Shown piece by piece: positions 44,084 to 53,888 of a stretch of DNA of 64,000 nucleotides. The notes under the pieces were generated by a model that saw only the letters and a program-made list of their open reading frames with translations, was not told the origin of the DNA and did no database searches. The stretch is from Guillardia theta CCMP2712 (lineage: Eukaryota > Protista > Cryptophyta). The stretch covers positions 335,626 to 399,625 of the forward strand of contig NW_005434646.1 in assembly GCF_000315625.1 (NCBI RefSeq), read 5' to 3'. The first letter of the stretch is position 1, and each line of letters starts with the position of its first letter. The translations under genes were made by a program, and so were the position numbers.

Positions 44084-46742
44084 GCGGGACTAATCAACTA
44101 CCCCTCTTTCCCTATTGCTTTGAACCCGTGCTGTGCCTCAATTTATCAACTAACCTACTAAACCCCCGACGTCAGTTGAACCCTCCTCTCGACCCGAGGC
44201 GGCTCGCGGCCCGCCGCCGGGGGGGGGGTGACTGACTGTCGGCTGATGGGACTCGTGATCAGCCATGCAGTTCCCTGCCCCAATTGGGCTACTCTAGTCC
44301 AACTCGATTCCTACCGGAAGGTTTCTTCTCAGGAAGCTGCTGTGTCTCTCACTCACTGAGTCAGGTCTCCTCATGTCGCCGCCCTTATTCCATTCATTCC
44401 TCACCTGCCTCGGCCGCTGATCCTCTCCTAATAAGTTTGAGAGCTGCATGTCGACTCGGTCTTCGCTTCTGTTTCCATAGGTCACCTTTCGTATCTACTG
44501 CAGGTCTAACTGCTTACTGCTTGCAGGGTGCTGAAGTGGGACTCTCCCTCCCCCGCTTGAACCTATTTGAGAGCCCCATCTCACTCTCTTGCCCTATCCA
44601 TCCCGACCCCTGTGATCCCCCATACACGCACGATTTCTTTGCTCTCCCTCCGGTTGCTTGTTGTTCCTCTGCTTCCTATCTGCTACGCTGCTTTACGTTT
44701 CTCTCATCTTCTGCCCGTTCTTTGCTGGATTCAGACTCTGTTCTGAGCTCTTCCTCTCCTCACTCTGCACTTGTAAGACTCTGCCATGCATCCTAATGCT
44801 GCTATTTACTCACATCTTATCCGCTAAAATACTGCATGTTTACATTACTGCACTTTCTGATACTTACGTGGCATTGTTGAACCAATGAACGTCAAGGGTC
44901 GAGCCAGAAGTCAAGCATGCATGTAGTCCGTGATGTCTTACTTGCTTTCATCTTGGAATTATTATTATTGAGAGTTCTATTTGCTAGTCGAATCTATCAT
45001 TGAGTCCTTTTACAACGTTTGCTTGGTGTAGAAATTGGTTGAAGAAGGTTGATTGGCTTCCCAAGTTTTTTCCTTTTTGATTTCCCATACACGTCGAATT
45101 CAATTCAGCATGATGAGAATTACCGATGAGAAGCGGTCACATTTAGATTGAAAAACCATTAAAACCATCATCTTGACGTCATTAACCGGAGAGTAACTGA
45201 TTGGTTTCCAACCAGATCGCTCTTAGGAAATTATATTACGTCAAACTTCTCAACCTTGTGGCCGTTCCAAAGAAATTCATGCAACTTGACAAAGAAATTG
45301 TCTACCACTTATGTGTTCTACCGATCCAAATGCATACATTCAGAATAACCCTTTGACGCAGCCTGAAAAACATCTTTGGTGCAATTTTCATTTTTCAGTT
45401 TCGTCCGAAGCTGGTGCATCCTGTAAATCTGAACAAGCATGAAGGGTTTGATTGGCTCTCAGTTCTCAAGAGACTCTTGTTTCAAGTGTCAGGAGCGCTC
45501 TTGCATGCTTTAACGAAACGGCATCCCCTTCTGATTGCAGCGACACGGTGCGACGACATTTTGCGTGCAGCCCTTCACAGAGGCCACCACGGTCCAACCC
45601 ACCCCAAAAATACCCAGAACTAGAGCCCAAGGTGAACATCCAGATATCAAGGGCACACAAAAGCGAGACCTCAAAACCTACCCTACCCCTTGTGTGCACA
45701 CACCATGTGGTGCGTGTGCACCTGGGTCCCAGGTTAACGTGTACATGTGTACACAGATCTTTATTTCTAGTAATCTTGGGTGTACATGAAATTAATTCTG
45801 TGGGCAATTGCTCAGTACGCTGAGGCAAGCTTGCAGTGGTGAAGATATTCCCGCCTGCCATGCCGCGGACATCAATGCGAGCAGCTATTCACCCGTCACA
45901 ACTCACAAGATTGCAACGAACAATGTGATAAGAAGAGATCATTGTGAGTGCTTTCAAAGGAGCAAACGTCCAAGAACACACCCAGCTAAGAAATCTTGTA
46001 TGAAGGGAGTTGAAGTGGACAGCACGAATGGACAGAAGCATAAAGACGGCAAAGTGGTCAAAGCTCAAACAACAATGATGCACAGCAACTACATAATCAA
46101 GATCAAGGAGATGGACAAGAGGGAAGCAGATGTCGACATCGGTATCAAAGTGAAGCGGCCAGATTCGCACGAGTGGCAAAGGAGATAAAGTCTTGCAACA
46201 ATTGATCGTCCATCTCTGCTGTCTCAATCTGTGCCGTAGTGGCATCAGATAAGATGGTTCTAGGCAGACTCTCCGGTGCATTTTGATTCTCCATTCATGA
46301 GGTGCTGTGTGGAGTTGTGAAGCCATCCAGTAACTGTCGTTTGGTTTATATTCGTAGTCTAACTACTCAGTACTGAATAAAGTTCTGTGTGAGCCTTGAG
46401 GACAGATGCCCTGGAGGCAAGCATAACAACGCGAAATAAGACTCAGTGTGCCGATGAGACGGGGCTTTGTGCAGCAACTACTCCCCCTCCCCCCCCCCAC
46501 CCCCACCGCCGCCGCCGCCGCCGCTGGGGTGCAATGCACCGAGTGAGAAGGAGCAGAGAGAACTTGATATAGGCCAAGTAAGCACTCAGTCTTCTCGTCG
46601 GTTCTAATTTGTTACTTGTCTATTACATGCTATGCACAATATGTCCTTAACTTTGAGTAGAGATGTCAAATGATCCTTCCCAAACTACACCGGGTGACCA
46701 TAGCTCATGTACATGAGACAGATTTATTGCCAGGTACCATGC

Positions 46743-47686
46743 CACTTAATTGTAATGAAACGTGAGGAGACAACTTTTTGCGAATAAATCATAATTTTTA
46801 TCTGTTTTGCGAATAAATCATTATTTTTATCTGTTTTTATAAATCAATTTATAATTTCAATGATTTTTATATTCAATCAAAAAATCTGTTCATTGCTCTT
46901 TGTTTTCCTTACCAAATCCCTATCATATTTTATTCAATTGAAATAATAGCTGCGCATTCGTGCCAATTATTACACANNNNNNNNNNNNNNNNNNNNNNNN
47001 NNNNNNNNNNNNNNNNNNNNNNNNNNNNNNNNNNNNNNNNNNNNNNNNNNNNNNNNNNNNNNNNNNNNNNNNNNNNCACCCACGGAGTGGGCCAGAGCCA
47101 AAACATAATATTAATTAAAATTATGAATCCTTCAAGGGTTATATAAGTAACAAAAGAGGCGAAGGGCAATAATTGAATTTCACCCTTCGCCAATATTCAC
47201 CCTTCGCACACACACACGGCTTAATTATTCTTATCTTTTATTTTTTTGGCTCTATAACTTGCATAATTTATTTAGGCGAAGGGGCGAAGGGTGAAATTCT
47301 ATTTTCATATTCTATTTTATATACCTCATAAAGTAACAAAATTATAATATTATCCCAAAAATTGAATTTCACCCTTCGCCCCTTCGCCTAACGTCTATAT
47401 ATCCTCTTTTTACCCTTCTTTTACCCTTGTATCCAGCTAAAACATGGCAAAGGGTCCCCTTCGCTTCTCCCTTCGCCACCCCTTCGCCTCCCTTCGCCAC
47501 CCTTCGCCACCCTTCGCCACCCTTTGCCAAACTATCCCCACTCTATTATAATGTTATATATTATATATTATCTATTATTTTTCTCCTTTTTATTAAAACC
47601 CCTTTATCATTACGCTTCCAGCAACCATTATTATACTAAATTATATTCTTTTTTTTATTATTATCTATCTTTCTTTATTATAAATG
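46743..47686 (+). repeat. Left terminal inverted repeat (includes a 100-N gap)
   Basis: Reverse complement of 48699-49569 except for the gap and one ~100-nt segment with adjacent 1-nt indels. Confidence 0.95.
46977..47076. other. Assembly gap (100 N)
   Basis: Run of N. Confidence 1.
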
Positions 47687-48277
47687 TCTTGTGACAATAG
47701 ATATCAAAATTTATATCAGTATGTCGGCACTACTAATAACACAACTCTCACGCCTATTTTTAATAAAATAAATTCAAATATCAATGTCTTGTATAGCAAT
47801 GTAGATATCCTTAATCATCAGACATCCGAACTATTTCAGAAGACTAATGATCTAGAAATTATCACCATTGAAACAAGTAATAACTTGATAGAAACTAATG
47901 ATTTACTACTTATTACTAGTAATAATTTAATTGAAACAAGCAATATATTATTTAACACATCAAATTTTGTTCTAGATCTGCAATCTCTTATCAAATATAA
48001 TGCTGATACCAATGAAACCATTATAACAAACAACAATAAAAATATATTATATGTCAAATATCAGACTAACCCTAATAAATATATCATTAAATTCACACTT
48101 GAAAACGGCTCGTTTATTACAATTCAACAGATTAAACAACAATTAGATGATTTAAACAACAATGCTGCCGCGCAAGAAACCAAACACAAAAACATAAAAA
48201 ATATATGGAGTCATTGCTTGAATAAAAAGCGCAATATGTTAATTTCTTATTTTTTTATTTATCAAATTCAAGCATAA
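47684..48277 (+). CDS. Element ORF1: Asn/Thr-rich TSN-repeat coiled-coil/fibre-like protein, probably 3'-truncated
   Basis: Intronless AT-rich ORF; ETSNNLIET-type heptad-like repeats; ATG sits at the TIR inner end. Confidence 0.7.
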   Translation: MSCDNRYQNLYQYVGTTNNTTLTPIFNKINSNINVLYSNVDILNHQTSELFQKTNDLEIITIETSNNLIETNDLLLITSNNLIETSNILFNTSNFVLDLQSLIKYNADTNETIITNNNKNILYVKYQTNPNKYIIKFTLENGSFITIQQIKQQLDDLNNNAAAQETKHKNIKNIWSHCLNKKRNMLISYFFIYQIQA

Positions 48278-48701
48278 ATTTTAAATTTGACAATACTTTC
48301 TTATGTTTGTCGCTATTCACATGTGCCTTAAATTCATCCTTTGATGGTGTTTTATCAAATTGATGATCACACACGGGGCATTTATTATTGCTTTTGATAT
48401 CTCCAACTTTTAATTTAATTGCTTTATCATATCTTTCTTTGTTTGTCATTTTCTTTTGTTTAGGTCCAACACTCGCTTTATCCTTGTATTGCTGATTTGC
48501 ATTGATAAGTTTCTTAGGTTTGACTGGTTTTTCATATTGTTTATTTGGCAACTTGCCGTCATAAGTTTTTAGATCTTGCATTATACCTTTGACTTTATCA
48601 TATTCCTTCGATCCTTTCTTGACAACACACCAAGTGCCAGAATGACCTTTATTGAACTCTTTCAGCGCTTGAATCCATGTGTTGCCTTTTCTAGTACTCA
48701 T
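48255..48701 (-). CDS. Element ORF2: Lys-rich small protein with DVNP-like N-terminal motif and C-terminal C2H2 zinc finger
   Basis: WIQALKEFNKGHSGTWCVVKKGSKEYDKVKGIM and CPVC-x15-HVNSDKH. ATG sits at the TIR inner end. Confidence 0.8.
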   Translation of the reverse strand: MSTRKGNTWIQALKEFNKGHSGTWCVVKKGSKEYDKVKGIMQDLKTYDGKLPNKQYEKPVKPKKLINANQQYKDKASVGPKQKKMTNKERYDKAIKLKVGDIKSNNKCPVCDHQFDKTPSKDEFKAHVNSDKHKKVLSNLKFMLEFDK

Positions 48702-49569
48702 TTATAATAAAGAAAGATAGATAATAATAAAAAAAAGAATATAATTTAGTATAATAATGGTTGCTGGAAGCGTAATGATAAAGGGGTTTTAATAAAAAGG
48801 AGAAAAATAATAGATAATATATAATATATAACATTATAATAGAGTGGGGATAGTTTGGCAAAGGGTGGCGAAGGGTGGCGAAGGGTGGCGAAGGGAGGCG
48901 AAGGGGTGGCGAAGGGAGAAGCGAAGGGGACCCTTTGCCATGTTTTAGCTGGATACAAGGGTAAAAGAAGGGTAAAAAGAGGATATATAGACGTTAGGCG
49001 AAGGGGCGAAGGGTGAAATTCAATTTTTTGGGGATAACTGATGCTGCCGCAACTTGTTGCAGTTCACAGTGACAGTCCGATTGTTGACTCGGAGGCCTGC
49101 GGAGCCCCCCGCCCGGCGGCGCGGCGCATGACGGCATGAGCCAAAAAAATAAAAGATAAGAATAATTAAGCCGTGTGTGTGTGCGAAGGGTGAATATTGG
49201 CGAAGGGTGAAATTCAATTATTGCCCTTCGCCTCTTTTGTTACTTATATAACCCTTGAAGGATTCATAATTTTAATTAATATTATGTTTTGGCTCTGGCC
49301 CACTCCGTGGGTGCGCTCGTTTGTTTTTGTTATTTTGTGTAATAATTGGCACGAATGCGCAGCTATTATTTCAATTGAATAAAATATGATAGGGATTTGG
49401 TAAGGAAAACAAAGAGCAATGAACAGATTTTTTGATTGAATATAAAAATCATTGAAATTATAAATTGATTTATAAAAACAGATAAAAATAATGATTTATT
49501 CGCAAAACAGATAAAAATTATGATTTATTCGCAAAAAGTTGTCTCCTCACGTTTCATTACAATTAAGTG
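48699..49569 (-). repeat. Right terminal inverted repeat (871 bp)
   Basis: Mirror of the left TIR; identical mirrored spurious ORFs appear in the track (MYPAKTW..., MAKGEIQ...). Confidence 0.95.
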
Positions 49570-49796
49570 CATGCGCTTCCGATGCTGCCCCCCGGCTGTA
49601 GCTCATGAGTGGGATGAAAGTTGTTGGCGTGCTCAGTGCACCGGGATCATCCTAAACACCTGGCACATTTCCCCGGCCATCGTTTCGGTCAGTCAGTGAT
49701 TCACAATTGGCATCAGCTTCTTCAATTCGCCGGCTCTTACCAGCAATCTAGAGAAATCGCGCCGCCACAAGAAGTGGTCGTCAAATAAGAGTCTGA

Positions 49797-49911
49797 ACAC
49801 AAACATCATCAAACCTGAAATCGGCTATCAGTTAGCCAGTAATTTACCGGCACAATTGGCACACAAACATCATTGAAACCTGAAATCGGCTATCAATTAG
49901 CCAGTAATTTA
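49797..49911. repeat. ~50-bp imperfect direct duplication
   Basis: ACACAAACATCAT..AAACCTGAAATCGGCTATCA.TTAGCCAGTAATTTA occurs at ~49797 and ~49861. Confidence 0.85.
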
Positions 49912-50710
49912 TCTGGCGATACCGGGACTGTATCCGAGGGACAGTCCGATCAGTGTCTTTGCCTCGACCGTCCGATTGGCCTTGCCAGTTGAGTGCTGAA
50001 ACTTGAACAACTTGAATCTCAAGTGGGAGTTTACAGATGATGAAAGTTTTAACGGTGGTTCATGCGGCCATTACCATGATTGAATAATCGTTTGACATGA
50101 CCCATAGGACCGTTCGAGTGACCGGCGGTGTCACAGGGGGCACTGCCAGTGAACTTCGGAACTCGGAATATGATAATCATGTGCCGATCGTCAATATGCT
50201 ACTGAGTACGGTCACCTCACTGTGTCAGTATGAGTAAGGCGGCCCTCCTCGGCGGAGAGCGGCAATGACCCTCCATGCGGCAGCAGTGCGGTCACTGCTC
50301 AGTAAGTTGCAGCCGGGGCCCGCCCCGGGCCGGGCCCGGGCCGGGGCCCCGGCGGGGGCCAATCGCGGCCCGGCCGCCGGCACTGCCCGCAGCCCGGCCC
50401 GGCTGAGGAAGTTGAAACTGAGACGGTCCGCCGGGCGCCCGCCGGGCCGGCCCGCAGGTCTCACCGTGCCAGACCGTACGGTCAACCTTCAAGTCGTACT
50501 AACCGTTGAACGGTTGAACCCGGCGTCACGGTGCCGTGGCCGCCGGGACTCCTGAGGCGGCCGCGTGATCGGAAGTTTCAAGTTTGATCGAATCGCACGC
50601 GCCGCGGCACCCAGTGGCACGGTCAGTCGTACCGGCCCGGGCCGTACCGTGATGACTCACAGTGATGTCCAGGCCCGGGCTTCCCGGCAGGGCCGCACTA
50701 GTACGGTCGG

Positions 50711-50951
50711 ACCCTACAAAGTTTTCTCAGCCCCTCAACTGAGTCGTGGGAAACGTGGTACTGAGAAGACTCCCGATGAGGGCGTGAAGAGATTTCTTCT
50801 AAATCGAGGGACTCCCGGATGAGGTGGAGGCTGGCCCCCGCGGAGATCTGAGGGGCCCGTGAATGTTGGGGCCGTGACTGTATAAATCAGATTATCCAGC
50901 TTCGATTTGTTGAGCGGAGGGATCAAGCTGAGCCGCTTCCGAGTTCCGTGC
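50711..50951 (+). repeat. Degenerate copy A of segment 53889-54228
   Basis: First 49 nt identical to 53889 onward, then colinear with short insertions and one large deletion. Confidence 0.9.
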
Positions 50952-51880: not shown

Positions 51881-52684
51881 ATGCCGAGGGTCAGGAAGAA
51901 TACACACACAAACAAGGAGAAGAAGATCAATCGAGTGAGGTTTGACAGCTTCATGCGCCTATGGGAAACCATGTTTCGACTGCAGATCGTCAGGATTATT
52001 GAGGTGGACGAAAAAAACGAAGCTATCGTCATGGAGGCGAGGCAGCCCGAGTTCCACAATCGTTTGCTGGAAGCAGCCAAGGAAGACAAAGCCTGGTGGG
52101 GAATGAACCGCAAACAGCTCGATAAGATCAAAAGCTTCTCGAAGATCATGTACAAGTTCTTGGGCTCGTTATGCCTCCGGCCTGTTCCAAGAACAAGGCC
52201 CAACAGTGCGCAATCATTGGAGGACAAGCAGGACTTCTTGTGGTCGAGGCGTTGGAGGTTTCATGTCCAACGCAAGGAGCTTGAAGAGCATGACGATCTT
52301 CATGGCTTTCTTGCCCAGAAATGTCCTGATCACGTGCAGAGTCCGCTTCTTACTCCGAATGTCAAGAGTGCTGCCGTGGGCACGGACGGGAGCAGCAACC
52401 TCCATCAAGTCATGTCCGAGTCAGACGCTGTCTCTACACTACGGGACAGCGATGAGAGTGACACAGATGGAGGCATCTGCGCAGAGATGGAGGATCAATT
52501 CCATGACGCCGGCATGTTCCATGATGCCGGCATGTTCCCTGATGCCGGCATGTTCCATGACAATGCCGGCATGTTCCTTGCCACGGAACTTGAAGCGGCC
52601 TCACTCCCAGACTCGGAGCTCACCTTGAACGATGACGACGATATCTTCAACTTCAATGTATTGTGTATGTCTCCGGGGTCGTGA
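51881..52684 (+). CDS. Hypothetical intronless protein with acidic tail and short MFHDAG repeats
   Basis: 267-aa protein-like ORF with 18-bp repeats at ~52500-52580; no family recognised. Confidence 0.5.
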   Translation: MPRVRKNTHTNKEKKINRVRFDSFMRLWETMFRLQIVRIIEVDEKNEAIVMEARQPEFHNRLLEAAKEDKAWWGMNRKQLDKIKSFSKIMYKFLGSLCLRPVPRTRPNSAQSLEDKQDFLWSRRWRFHVQRKELEEHDDLHGFLAQKCPDHVQSPLLTPNVKSAAVGTDGSSNLHQVMSESDAVSTLRDSDESDTDGGICAEMEDQFHDAGMFHDAGMFPDAGMFHDNAGMFLATELEAASLPDSELTLNDDDDIFNFNVLCMSPGS

Positions 52685-53888
52685 CGGTAGTCCTTCAATT
52701 CGGCACTGATCGGACTCCCGGAGTCCGGTCCGGCCGGGCCGCGGAAGTCCCGGACTGGTACCCCGGCGTGGCCGCTGCACTCAGCGCGGCGGCGGGCAGA
52801 CACCGTCACGCCGCGGCCGCGTCTGACTGCACTGCTGCAGACGCCGCCGACACGGCGCGGGCCGCGCGTCGGACCGTCGGACTGCACCGTCACTGGCACT
52901 CCAGGCTCCGGGCCCGGCGGAGGCCGCCGGTGACTCTACGGTGCGGCCGTCACCGAGTCGAAGGCGCGGCCCGCCCCGCCGCCCGGCCCGGGCCCGTTGC
53001 CGCGGCCGCGGCCGGGCGCGTGATAGTAGCCCGGGGCGCCCGGCGCAGCGGCGGGCCGGGCGGCGGGCCGGGCCCGGCGTCACAGGCTGAGCCTGAGTCA
53101 CGGAGTCGGCACGTCGTCACAAGTACTCAGGCTGTCACAGTGTGACTCGCTCTCAACCTGGCCTAGGCTCCCGCCGGCGGCGCCGGAGTCCGTCCGCCGC
53201 GCCCGGGTTCACTGATTACTGAGCCGCGGCGGGCTCACCGTCACGGTGCCTAGTAGACTATGATTAAGTCCAGTCAGTCATGAAAAGTAAAACGCAATAC
53301 TAGGCTAGGCTTTGTTTTTAACTTACTGCCAACCGTCAGTTCACAGAGTCACTGAGTCAAGTACCGTCGACTTCAGTAGGCCTGCCAAACGGCCCGTGAC
53401 AGTCACAGGTACCACAACTTTCAAACATTCATCATCCCGCCCCCGGCCTCCCAAGTTTGAGGAGCGATCAGTGACCCGCTGCGTCAACGTCAGACGTATG
53501 CTCGACGTATGCGCCGTCGCCTTACCCAGTGTTATCGCTACACTGGTACACATCTTATGCCCCAGCATGGGCTATGCCATACGTTGCCGCTCCATTATTT
53601 CAAATGCGGCAGCGGCATCCGATGATCGAAAGCTACGCAGCCATGGAGCCAGGCCCGGAGAGCATGATGAGGTTCGAAGTTCGTCGATTCAAGTTCATGT
53701 GCATGTCCAAGCTCAACACATTGGAAGAGAGGACGATTGCATCATCCGTGTCCTCGCTAGCCGCCAAGTTGCGGGGGTGGAGAACTCGGGAGGTGAGCAG
53801 TGAGAATGGAAGAGCACGATGGACAGTTGAGAAAGGAGATCCAGGCTTGCCGGTGAGTGGTCAAAGCTTGCCCCAGTCACTGAGTCGC

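Follow-up and report, generated by a model that had tools for sequence, protein, structure and literature searches.

A short AT-rich block with long inverted arms, flanked on both sides by the same 5-nt word, raises two questions in the genome of the cryptophyte Guillardia theta CCMP2712: what kind of element it descends from, and how DNA that encodes nothing able to integrate, replicate or package it came to occupy its site. The window analysed is a stretch of 64,000 nt from contig NW_005434646.1 (RefSeq assembly GCF_000315625.1; positions 335,626 to 399,625, forward strand), and the element lies at positions 46743–49569 of the window, by offset ~382.4–385.2 kb on scaffold JH992992.1 (GCA_000315625.1). 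The reading favoured here, with a probability of roughly 0.55, is that it descends from a Polinton-like virus (PLV) resembling G. theta PLV element 1 (Guil1) and is what is left, in non-autonomous form, of a full-length insertion that underwent an internal deletion in place and a later lesion in the right arm. A previous description made from the letters of the window (the sequence-only reading) had proposed an internally deleted derivative of an endogenous virus, and this proposal is borne out, with the source being a Guil1-like PLV that shares an arm and its first gene with L003, a 12.2-kb metagenome contig in the European Nucleotide Archive (ENA).

Architecture of the arms and core

As written, the element spans 2,827 nt including 100 unspecified bases (N), or ~2,749 nt (~2.75 kb) if the assembly gap that these bases stand for measures 22 nt. 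Its features, including its open reading frames (ORFs), are as follows, in window coordinates.

46738–46742, no strand: flanking direct repeat CATGC, left copy, 5 nt
46743–49569, no strand: whole mini-element
46743–47686, plus strand: left inverted arm, with no coding sequence before the ATG of ORF1; holds the gap and the ancestral version of the differing block
46776–46833, plus strand: 29-nt tandem repeats, two copies, left arm, close to its outer end; mirrored at 49475–49532
46977–47076, no strand: assembly gap, 100 N, inside the left arm
47448–47544, plus strand: short-repeat cluster (core CCCTTCGCC), left arm; mirrored at 48841–48937
47684–48277, plus strand: ORF1, 197 amino acids (aa), a 3'-truncated gene of an uncharacterised coiled-coil family
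48255–48701, minus strand: ORF2, 148 aa, intact, with a C-terminal C2H2 zinc finger
48699–49569, minus strand: right inverted arm, 871 nt, with a derived GC-rich replacement block of ~100 nt
48841–48937, minus strand: short-repeat cluster, mirror copy in the right arm
49475–49532, minus strand: 29-nt tandem repeats, two copies, mirror copy in the right arm
49570–49574, no strand: flanking direct repeat CATGC, right copy, 5 nt

The outer left end at 46743 reads CACTTAATTG, and its reverse complement closes the element at 49569. The 25-nt terminal sequence has two sites in the window, which are the two ends of the element, with none expected by chance, and the word CATGC abuts both ends (46738–46742 and 49570–49574), the chance of such an adjacent 5-mer match being ~0.001. 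Inverted arms of ~870 nt with perfect termini (25-nt ends; right arm, 871 nt) and a 5-bp CATGC duplication on both sides, as first described, are thus confirmed, the latter as an exact flanking repeat. As CATG is palindromic, the flanks could alternatively be read as an imperfect extension of the inverted repeats shifted by one base, which is the weaker explanation. The arms account for ~63% of the element, close to the ~60% given initially, and the core holds the two convergent ORFs that had been noted. An integrase, polymerase, capsid homologue or transposase is present neither in the element, as had also been noted, nor elsewhere in the window. The GC content of the element is 0.326 and that of its core 0.288, against 0.511 for the remainder of the window; the contrast first drawn between an AT-rich block and a GC-rich host stands for the block (0.33), but the host DNA is mid-GC (0.51) and not strongly GC-rich.

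Three blocks of 234, 176 and 333 nt show 100% identity between the arms, with no point differences over 743 aligned nt, and on that account the insertion appears to be recent. The sequence-only reading had described the arms as near-identical, which is correct for these three blocks but overlooked a mid-arm block of ~100 nt that is unrelated between the arms. The left version of this block has a GC content of 0.25 and the right version 0.64. The left version is the ancestral one, since it aligns with L003, and the GC-rich right version looks like filler from break repair with a host-like composition; no source for it was found in the window or in any fetched relative locus. Both arms extend through the ATG of the ORF that reads inward from them, and the upstream region is identical for ORF1 and ORF2.

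The 100-N gap falls within the left arm. The sequence on either side of it aligns without any shift to the right arm, where 22 nt occupy the corresponding position, and L003 carries homologous sequence where the gap falls, so that the true size of the gap is probably ~22 nt. No gene of the element crosses it, and the apparent ORFs that span it are artefacts of the Ns. A gap inside one of two near-identical inverted repeats, which are hard to assemble, could point to mis-assembly of the arms, or of the placement of the AT-rich sequence, around it. Such an artefact is very improbable, as both junctions between host and element lie in uninterrupted sequence, the arms differ by the ~100-nt block and so are not copies of the same reads, and contigs from other samples independently confirm the arm sequence, the sequence at the gap and the order of arm and gene.

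The arms are rich in short repeats. A 13-nt word with the core CCCTTCGCC has nine matches in the window, all of them within the element, where 0.11 would be expected. In each arm its copies are arranged partly in tandem, 10 nt apart, and partly as inverted pairs that are prone to form hairpins. The same repeat architecture is present in the relatives with differing words, the contig L004 having the word of the element and L002, L011 and Guil1 having others. In L003 the word is C-richer than in L004 (regions compared: L003:560-1000, L004:1-110 and window 47160–47545), yet the zinc-finger proteins of these two contigs are identical and their 611-aa proteins (see below) 99.7% identical. Judged from these alignments, the arm repeats look to be turning over in concert and much faster than the genes, and they have the appearance of putative protein-binding sites. 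The 29-nt tandem repeats of the outer arm end are absent from L003.

Relatives of the arms and end genes

The protein encoded by ORF2 has a C-terminal finger (Pfam Zn-C2H2_12, E 5e-5), which is also the only region in which its structure model is confident. Pfam and PHROGs give nothing beyond this C2H2 finger, and the fold has no significant match in BFVD. In assembled environmental data, the protein is 96% identical to P0001 (Logan contig, SRR30872625), 95% identical to P0007 (ENA ERZ930064 and ERZ930071) and 78% identical to P0002 (Joint Genome Institute (JGI) 3300013132), and at the DNA level the gene is 93–95% identical to its counterparts in L003, L004 and L001. In all of the relatives (L003, L004, L001 and L002) the zinc-finger gene directly follows the arm. 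Between lineages the ratio of non-synonymous to synonymous substitution rates (dN/dS) is 0.05–0.14, indicative of strong purifying selection on the gene, and the copy in the element has five lineage-specific codon changes, three synonymous and two non-synonymous. A protein search found no homologue among the annotated G. theta proteins, and exact-protein look-ups of ORF1, ORF2 and the neighbouring leucine-rich repeat (LRR) ORF found none of them on record. Scans of IMG/VR with ORF1, ORF2 and the 619-aa protein discussed below, together with the family alignment of the latter, recovered no relatives, and a single JGI metagenome scan returned only the contig already known. A literature search for the project PRJEB17505 gave no paper in which it is mentioned.

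The contig L003 opens with ~285 nt of GA-rich, host-like DNA, followed by an arm that is homologous to the arm of the element over ~800 nt, with an identity of 80–90% in the outer part, 55–65% in the short-repeat part and 90–95% beside the ATG. The genes after the arm are, in order, the zinc-finger gene, a gene for a 611-aa protein, a gene for a 66-aa protein, a 901-aa primase-helicase (Prim-Pol/PriCT_2/DUF5906) and a DUF5754 (Tlr6F) gene, and then genes for a glutaredoxin-like protein, a SLATT-like protein and proteins of 298, 471 and at least 500 aa. The contigs L001 and L004 likewise have the zinc-finger gene followed by a 611/619-aa gene, so that all three relatives from which DNA past the zinc-finger gene was recovered (L001, L003 and L004) carry this recombinase-like gene there.

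The identity of the lineage follows from a comparison with L006, an island on G. theta scaffold JH993077.1 that is richer in AT. Yutin et al. 2015 (PMC4642659) give the 483-aa protein of this island in their Additional file 4 under the name MCP_Guil1, a PLV major capsid protein (MCP), and L006 is therefore Guil1. Eight of the L003 proteins have homologues in L006: the 611-aa and 66-aa proteins, the helicase, Tlr6F, the SLATT-like protein, the 298-aa protein and two paralogous capsid homologues. The last two are the 471-aa and at least 500-aa proteins, which match the 483-aa protein with E-values of 5e-24 and 8e-23. On gene content, the L003 type is a PLV with these two proteins as its capsid homologues. 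The capsid homologues have a weak Capsid_N match in Pfam (E 0.03), a PDB sequence search with their profile returned nothing, and they have no match by tblastn in GenBank phage records. No minor capsid protein or packaging ATPase is recognised by Pfam in the recovered part of L003, a partial contig, or in the L006 parts; both are absent from the element, and a gene for a PLV major capsid protein is found neither in the element nor anywhere else in the window. No homologue of the zinc-finger gene is present in the fetched 22-kb portion of Guil1.

The two capsid homologues of L003 are adjacent (L003:9284-11535) and both match the single MCP of Guil1, which suggests a tandem duplication of the capsid gene in the L003 lineage.

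A parent with the same ends and with capsid genes had been anticipated from the sequence of the window. The homologous arm, the first gene, the recombinase-like gene and the capsid homologues are all present in the relatives, as L003 illustrates. The terminus of L003 does not start with CAC. The CAC start of the termini, together with the 5-nt flanking repeat, had suggested a resemblance to Transib, and it would suit an ordinary DDE transposon (Transib-like or other) of non-viral origin that had captured its ORFs. The probability of this explanation is negligible, as homology to the end of a PLV contig extends over ~800 nt of arm and the first gene, the CAC start is not kept in L003, and a transposase is found neither in the element nor in the window. 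A Transib-like or other DDE transposon was accordingly rejected as an identity, the arms being shared with a PLV and a RAG1-like DDE transposase being absent. A virophage or transpoviron, the other affiliation raised at first, was also rejected: the element and its relatives hold no virophage MCP or protease and no transpoviron helicase set, and the relatives carry PLV-type capsid homologues and synteny with Guil1.

The second end gene, ORF1, has no family in Pfam or PHROGs and no match in a word-based protein search, and a full HMMER search places it in a small family of which only distant or partial relatives were recovered. These comprise matches to the N-terminus (P0014 and P0015), matches to the middle part (P0016, P0025 and P0026) and a transcript from Hanusia phi (P0018). 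The similarity is confined to approximately the first 165 residues, while the relatives extend to >400 aa (L011), and the tail of ORF1, its junction-specific last part, matches nothing in protein collections. Because the relatives continue far past the matched part and the tail matches nothing, ORF1 is taken as shown to be the retained 5' part of a longer gene, broken once, by 3' truncation. The retained part has no stops and no frameshifts. Pfam returns nothing for the relatives of ORF1, and a role for the family as a fibre-like protein would be a guess.

In L011 the ORF1-type gene lies just inside an AT-rich arm with short inverted repeats, and this arm is homologous to the one that lies upstream of the L002 zinc-finger gene (83% over 71 nt, E 1e-15), each arm being oriented alike with respect to its gene. 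These two arms are as expected if the genes of ORF1 and ORF2 face inward from opposite arms of the full-length genome, an arrangement to which the alignments point.

Several other observations concern the same gene families. The ORF1-family gene of L011 (L011:246-1472) is interrupted by one in-frame stop and so reads as two ORFs of a single frame; the stop may be a true nonsense codon, may reflect a sequencing error or may be read through. A short AT-rich island in another contig (L009:1900-4500; ENA ERZ930064 contig k127_56604), with a GC content of 0.35–0.43 within surroundings of 0.54–0.60, holds a 64-aa ORF resembling the N-terminus of the zinc-finger protein, a weakly T5orf172-like 257-aa ORF, a fragment 94% identical to a gene of the PLV contig L007 and an ORF1-family gene without its N-terminus; no inverted arms were found in this island, which looks like another mosaic PLV remnant. 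In Hanusia phi, a relative of Guillardia, transcriptome proteins (EukProt) include a homologue of the recombinase-like protein (P0012; 43% identity) and the ORF1-family fragment already mentioned (P0018), and PLV genes of these two types appear to be expressed in that alga.

Integration, deletion and the order of events

If the favoured reading is correct, a full-length PLV, >12 kb by comparison with the relatives, would have entered the chromosome at a CATGC site. Its expected order is arm, zinc-finger gene, recombinase-like gene, 66-aa gene, primase-helicase, Tlr6F, SLATT-like gene, capsid genes, ORF1-type gene and arm. A single internal deletion would then have taken everything between the two arm-proximal genes together with the 3' part of the ORF1 gene, and a second lesion would have exchanged ~100 nt of the right arm for GC-rich, host-like filler. 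The comparisons show a PLV-derived insert with intact termini, a 5-nt flanking repeat, a single internal deletion and a replaced block in the right arm, while the order in which these arose belongs to the favoured reading. We infer that the integration was enzyme-mediated and that the element is now inert.

A distinct tyrosine recombinase, encoded near the genome termini, has been reported for the G. theta PLVs (PMC4642659), and the 611/619-aa protein of the relatives is 40% identical to GUITHDRAFT_145933 of Guil1. The family fits a candidate tyrosine recombinase, an assignment that draws on the published one (PMC4642659) and on the position of the gene. The 611-aa and 619-aa proteins have no Pfam match and no PDB sequence match, including with a profile of the family, and the structure model of the 611-aa protein (L003, m96186584a95f) is poor (predicted local distance difference test, pLDDT, 52), its best folds being the protelomerase TelA ahead of Cre at E 0.03–0.2, which is not significant. 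If the likeness to TelA in this model is real, the enzyme could act on the ends of the genome instead of, or besides, integrating it.

Among cryptophyte PLVs, duplications of 5–6 bp go with rve integrases, and PLVs with tyrosine recombinases are usually without them (PMC12220804). No rve gene is present in the 12 kb seen of the L003-type lineage. One possible origin of the CATGC repeats is a staggered-cut integrase supplied by an unseen part of the parent or by another resident element, and another is host end-joining that caught a linear genome at a staggered break. A further, doubtful, proposal is that CATGC is a shared crossover core, left when a tyrosine recombinase joined a circularised element (end-core-end) to a CATGC in the host. 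The lineage is credited with such an enzyme and is without an rve integrase, and the joined ends would form perfect inverted repeats around the 5-mer, arranged as in the core site of a recombinase. Next to the L003 terminus a 5-mer of similar form (C-W-W-G-C) may be discerned, although with two cases the comparison is weak and depends on where the end is placed, the boundary of L003 being ambiguous. Against this proposal, flanking repeats in tyrosine-recombinase cryptophyte PLVs are rare, longer or judged coincidental (PMC12220804), and the recombinase assignment derives from the literature, with the fold matches obtained here not significant.

Whether the interior was lost before or after insertion is the point on which the favoured reading is most nearly balanced, with a deletion in place after integration being somewhat the better supported order. 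It is favoured because the right-arm block is host-like (GC 0.64) and the left version ancestral, and because replication of a linear genome, with each end serving as template for the other, would be expected to erase an asymmetry of this kind. The arms hold hairpin-prone inverted pairs, and long inverted repeats are prone to deletion, which also argues for decay in place, as do the retention of the recombinase-like gene beside the zinc-finger gene in three of three relatives with downstream DNA and the finding of the junction-specific tail of ORF1 nowhere else.

The opposite order, in which the deletion predates the insertion, would make the element a mini-PLV comparable to a miniature inverted-repeat transposable element (MITE) or a defective interfering genome, with full-length PLVs providing integration, and perhaps replication and packaging, in trans. 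This is a tentative alternative and less likely than decay in place. Its case is built on the perfect termini with their exact 5-nt repeat, the absence of point differences over 743 nt of the arms, the identical upstream regions and start codons kept by both arm-proximal genes, and a zinc-finger ORF that is intact with only five lineage-specific codon changes. Helpers are plausible, given the close full-length relatives (93–96% identity) in environmental data, and published PLV screens took inserts of 6–80 kb only (PMC12220804), so that short forms would have been missed. On the other side, the element is a single copy in 64 kb, no protein with the junction-specific tail of ORF1 is present in protein collections, and all three relatives with downstream DNA retain the recombinase-like gene next to the zinc-finger gene. 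The host-like filler in one arm would also be hard to keep through replication with homogenised ends. A stronger version, that the short form is a still-propagating PLV satellite consisting of cis-acting arms, whose fast-evolving short repeats would serve as binding sites for proteins, and two end genes, moved or packaged in trans by full-length PLVs with CATGC as the recombinase core, is improbable; if true, it would be the first satellite of PLVs to be described from an alga.

Several points weigh against decay of a full-length insertion in place. The lack of point differences in 743 nt alongside two large rearrangements fits equally well with a defective genome formed before or during integration, and the intact termini, flanking repeat, promoter-proximal regions and zinc-finger ORF are what would be expected of a substrate acted on in trans. 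The copies of the short form were counted within the 64-kb window only. The placement of ORF1 at the far end of the parent comes from a more distant lineage (L011/L002) and not from a close full-length relative. Further, the identity of the 611-aa protein as a recombinase is taken from the literature, the sequence and structure tests performed here not being significant, and a tyrosine recombinase is not expected to yield a 5-bp target duplication (PMC12220804).

Known counterparts and genomic setting

Non-autonomous deletion derivatives of elements with terminal inverted repeats, such as MITEs and internally deleted Polinton/Maverick copies, keep intact ends and a flanking repeat and have lost their enzyme genes. 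MITEs are usually <1 kb, non-coding and multi-copy. The element resembles them in its intact inverted termini, its flanking repeat and its lack of an enzyme gene, and departs from them in being 63% arm and in having two ORFs. As in defective interfering genomes and satellites, the ends are kept and internal genes lost, though the element is known here from its chromosomal copy alone, and the environmental relatives recovered all show the gene order of the full-length form. Some transpovirons and virophages carry small zinc-finger proteins, and the element shares with these groups a small, AT-rich, linear-type organisation with long inverted ends; the difference is that its relatives have capsid homologues of PLV type. 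The likeness to Transib extends to the 5-bp flanking repeat and the CAC-starting terminus, while the PLV-homologous arms and the lack of a RAG1-like transposase set it apart.

With Guil1-3 the element shares the host genome and an AT-richness relative to that host, and with Guil1 it shares hairpin-forming short repeats in non-coding DNA near the end. It differs from Guil1 in size and content, at 2.8 kb with only the arms and two end genes against ~20 kb for the Guil1 type, in a recombinase-like protein that is ~40% identical in its lineage, and in a GC content of 0.33 against 0.40–0.45. Because it is so much more AT-rich than Guil1, the lineage of the element is considered a younger, separate invasion. 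The YREC (tyrosine recombinase) cryptophyte PLVs surveyed by Bulzu et al. 2025 (PMC12220804) have arms of hundreds of nt to kilobases and a large GC gap to the host, as does the element, and have SLATT genes near Tlr6F and primase-helicase replication genes, as does its lineage; flanking repeats are rare among them, whereas an exact 5-mer is found here. That survey covered inserts of 6–80 kb only and hence contains no counterpart of the 2.8-kb form.

The traits of PLVs that the element displays are descent of the arm and the arm-proximal gene, long inverted repeats and a GC content unlike that of the host. The element itself has none of the defining PLV features (capsid genes, ATPase) and should be filed as PLV-derived, not as a PLV. 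Internally deleted inverted-repeat copies are a familiar type of genomic fossil, of which it is an instance not listed before, and it leaves the picture of PLV biology unchanged. The literature lists three complete and two partial PLV copies in G. theta, the reference cryptophyte genome, and the element adds the trace of a second, much younger PLV lineage that invaded it. This lineage is probably still circulating, because relatives that are 93–96% identical occur in public metagenome and read-archive assemblies. A remnant without a capsid gene is invisible to capsid-based screens and is dropped by size filters of at least 6 kb. The element is, further, a clean case in which to ask how a PLV provirus decays, whether or not short forms spread and how flanking 5-mers arise where the lineage has a tyrosine recombinase ascribed to it.

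The insert sits in a gene-poor stretch, with no convincing coding ORF in the 3 kb to its left or the 2 kb to its right. A tblastn search with 117 ORFs of the relatives found no other virus-related or PLV genes in the window, and Rfam identified no family in it. The genes of the window are ordinary eukaryotic ones (eIF2A, NAP, PDZ and LRR proteins), and two of its ORFs agree exactly with G. theta CCMP2712 proteins from scaffold JH992992.1. Three features of the flanking DNA lie close to the insert. A C-rich run followed by GCC repeats occurs at 46484–46518, ~220 nt left of the insertion site. To the right, 240 nt from the element, there are two 36-nt direct repeats (97% identical) that are 65 nt apart (49811–49911), and somewhat further on, still close to the insert, islands with a GC content of 0.70–0.77 and overlapping GC palindromes occupy 50250–50750 and 52500–53250.

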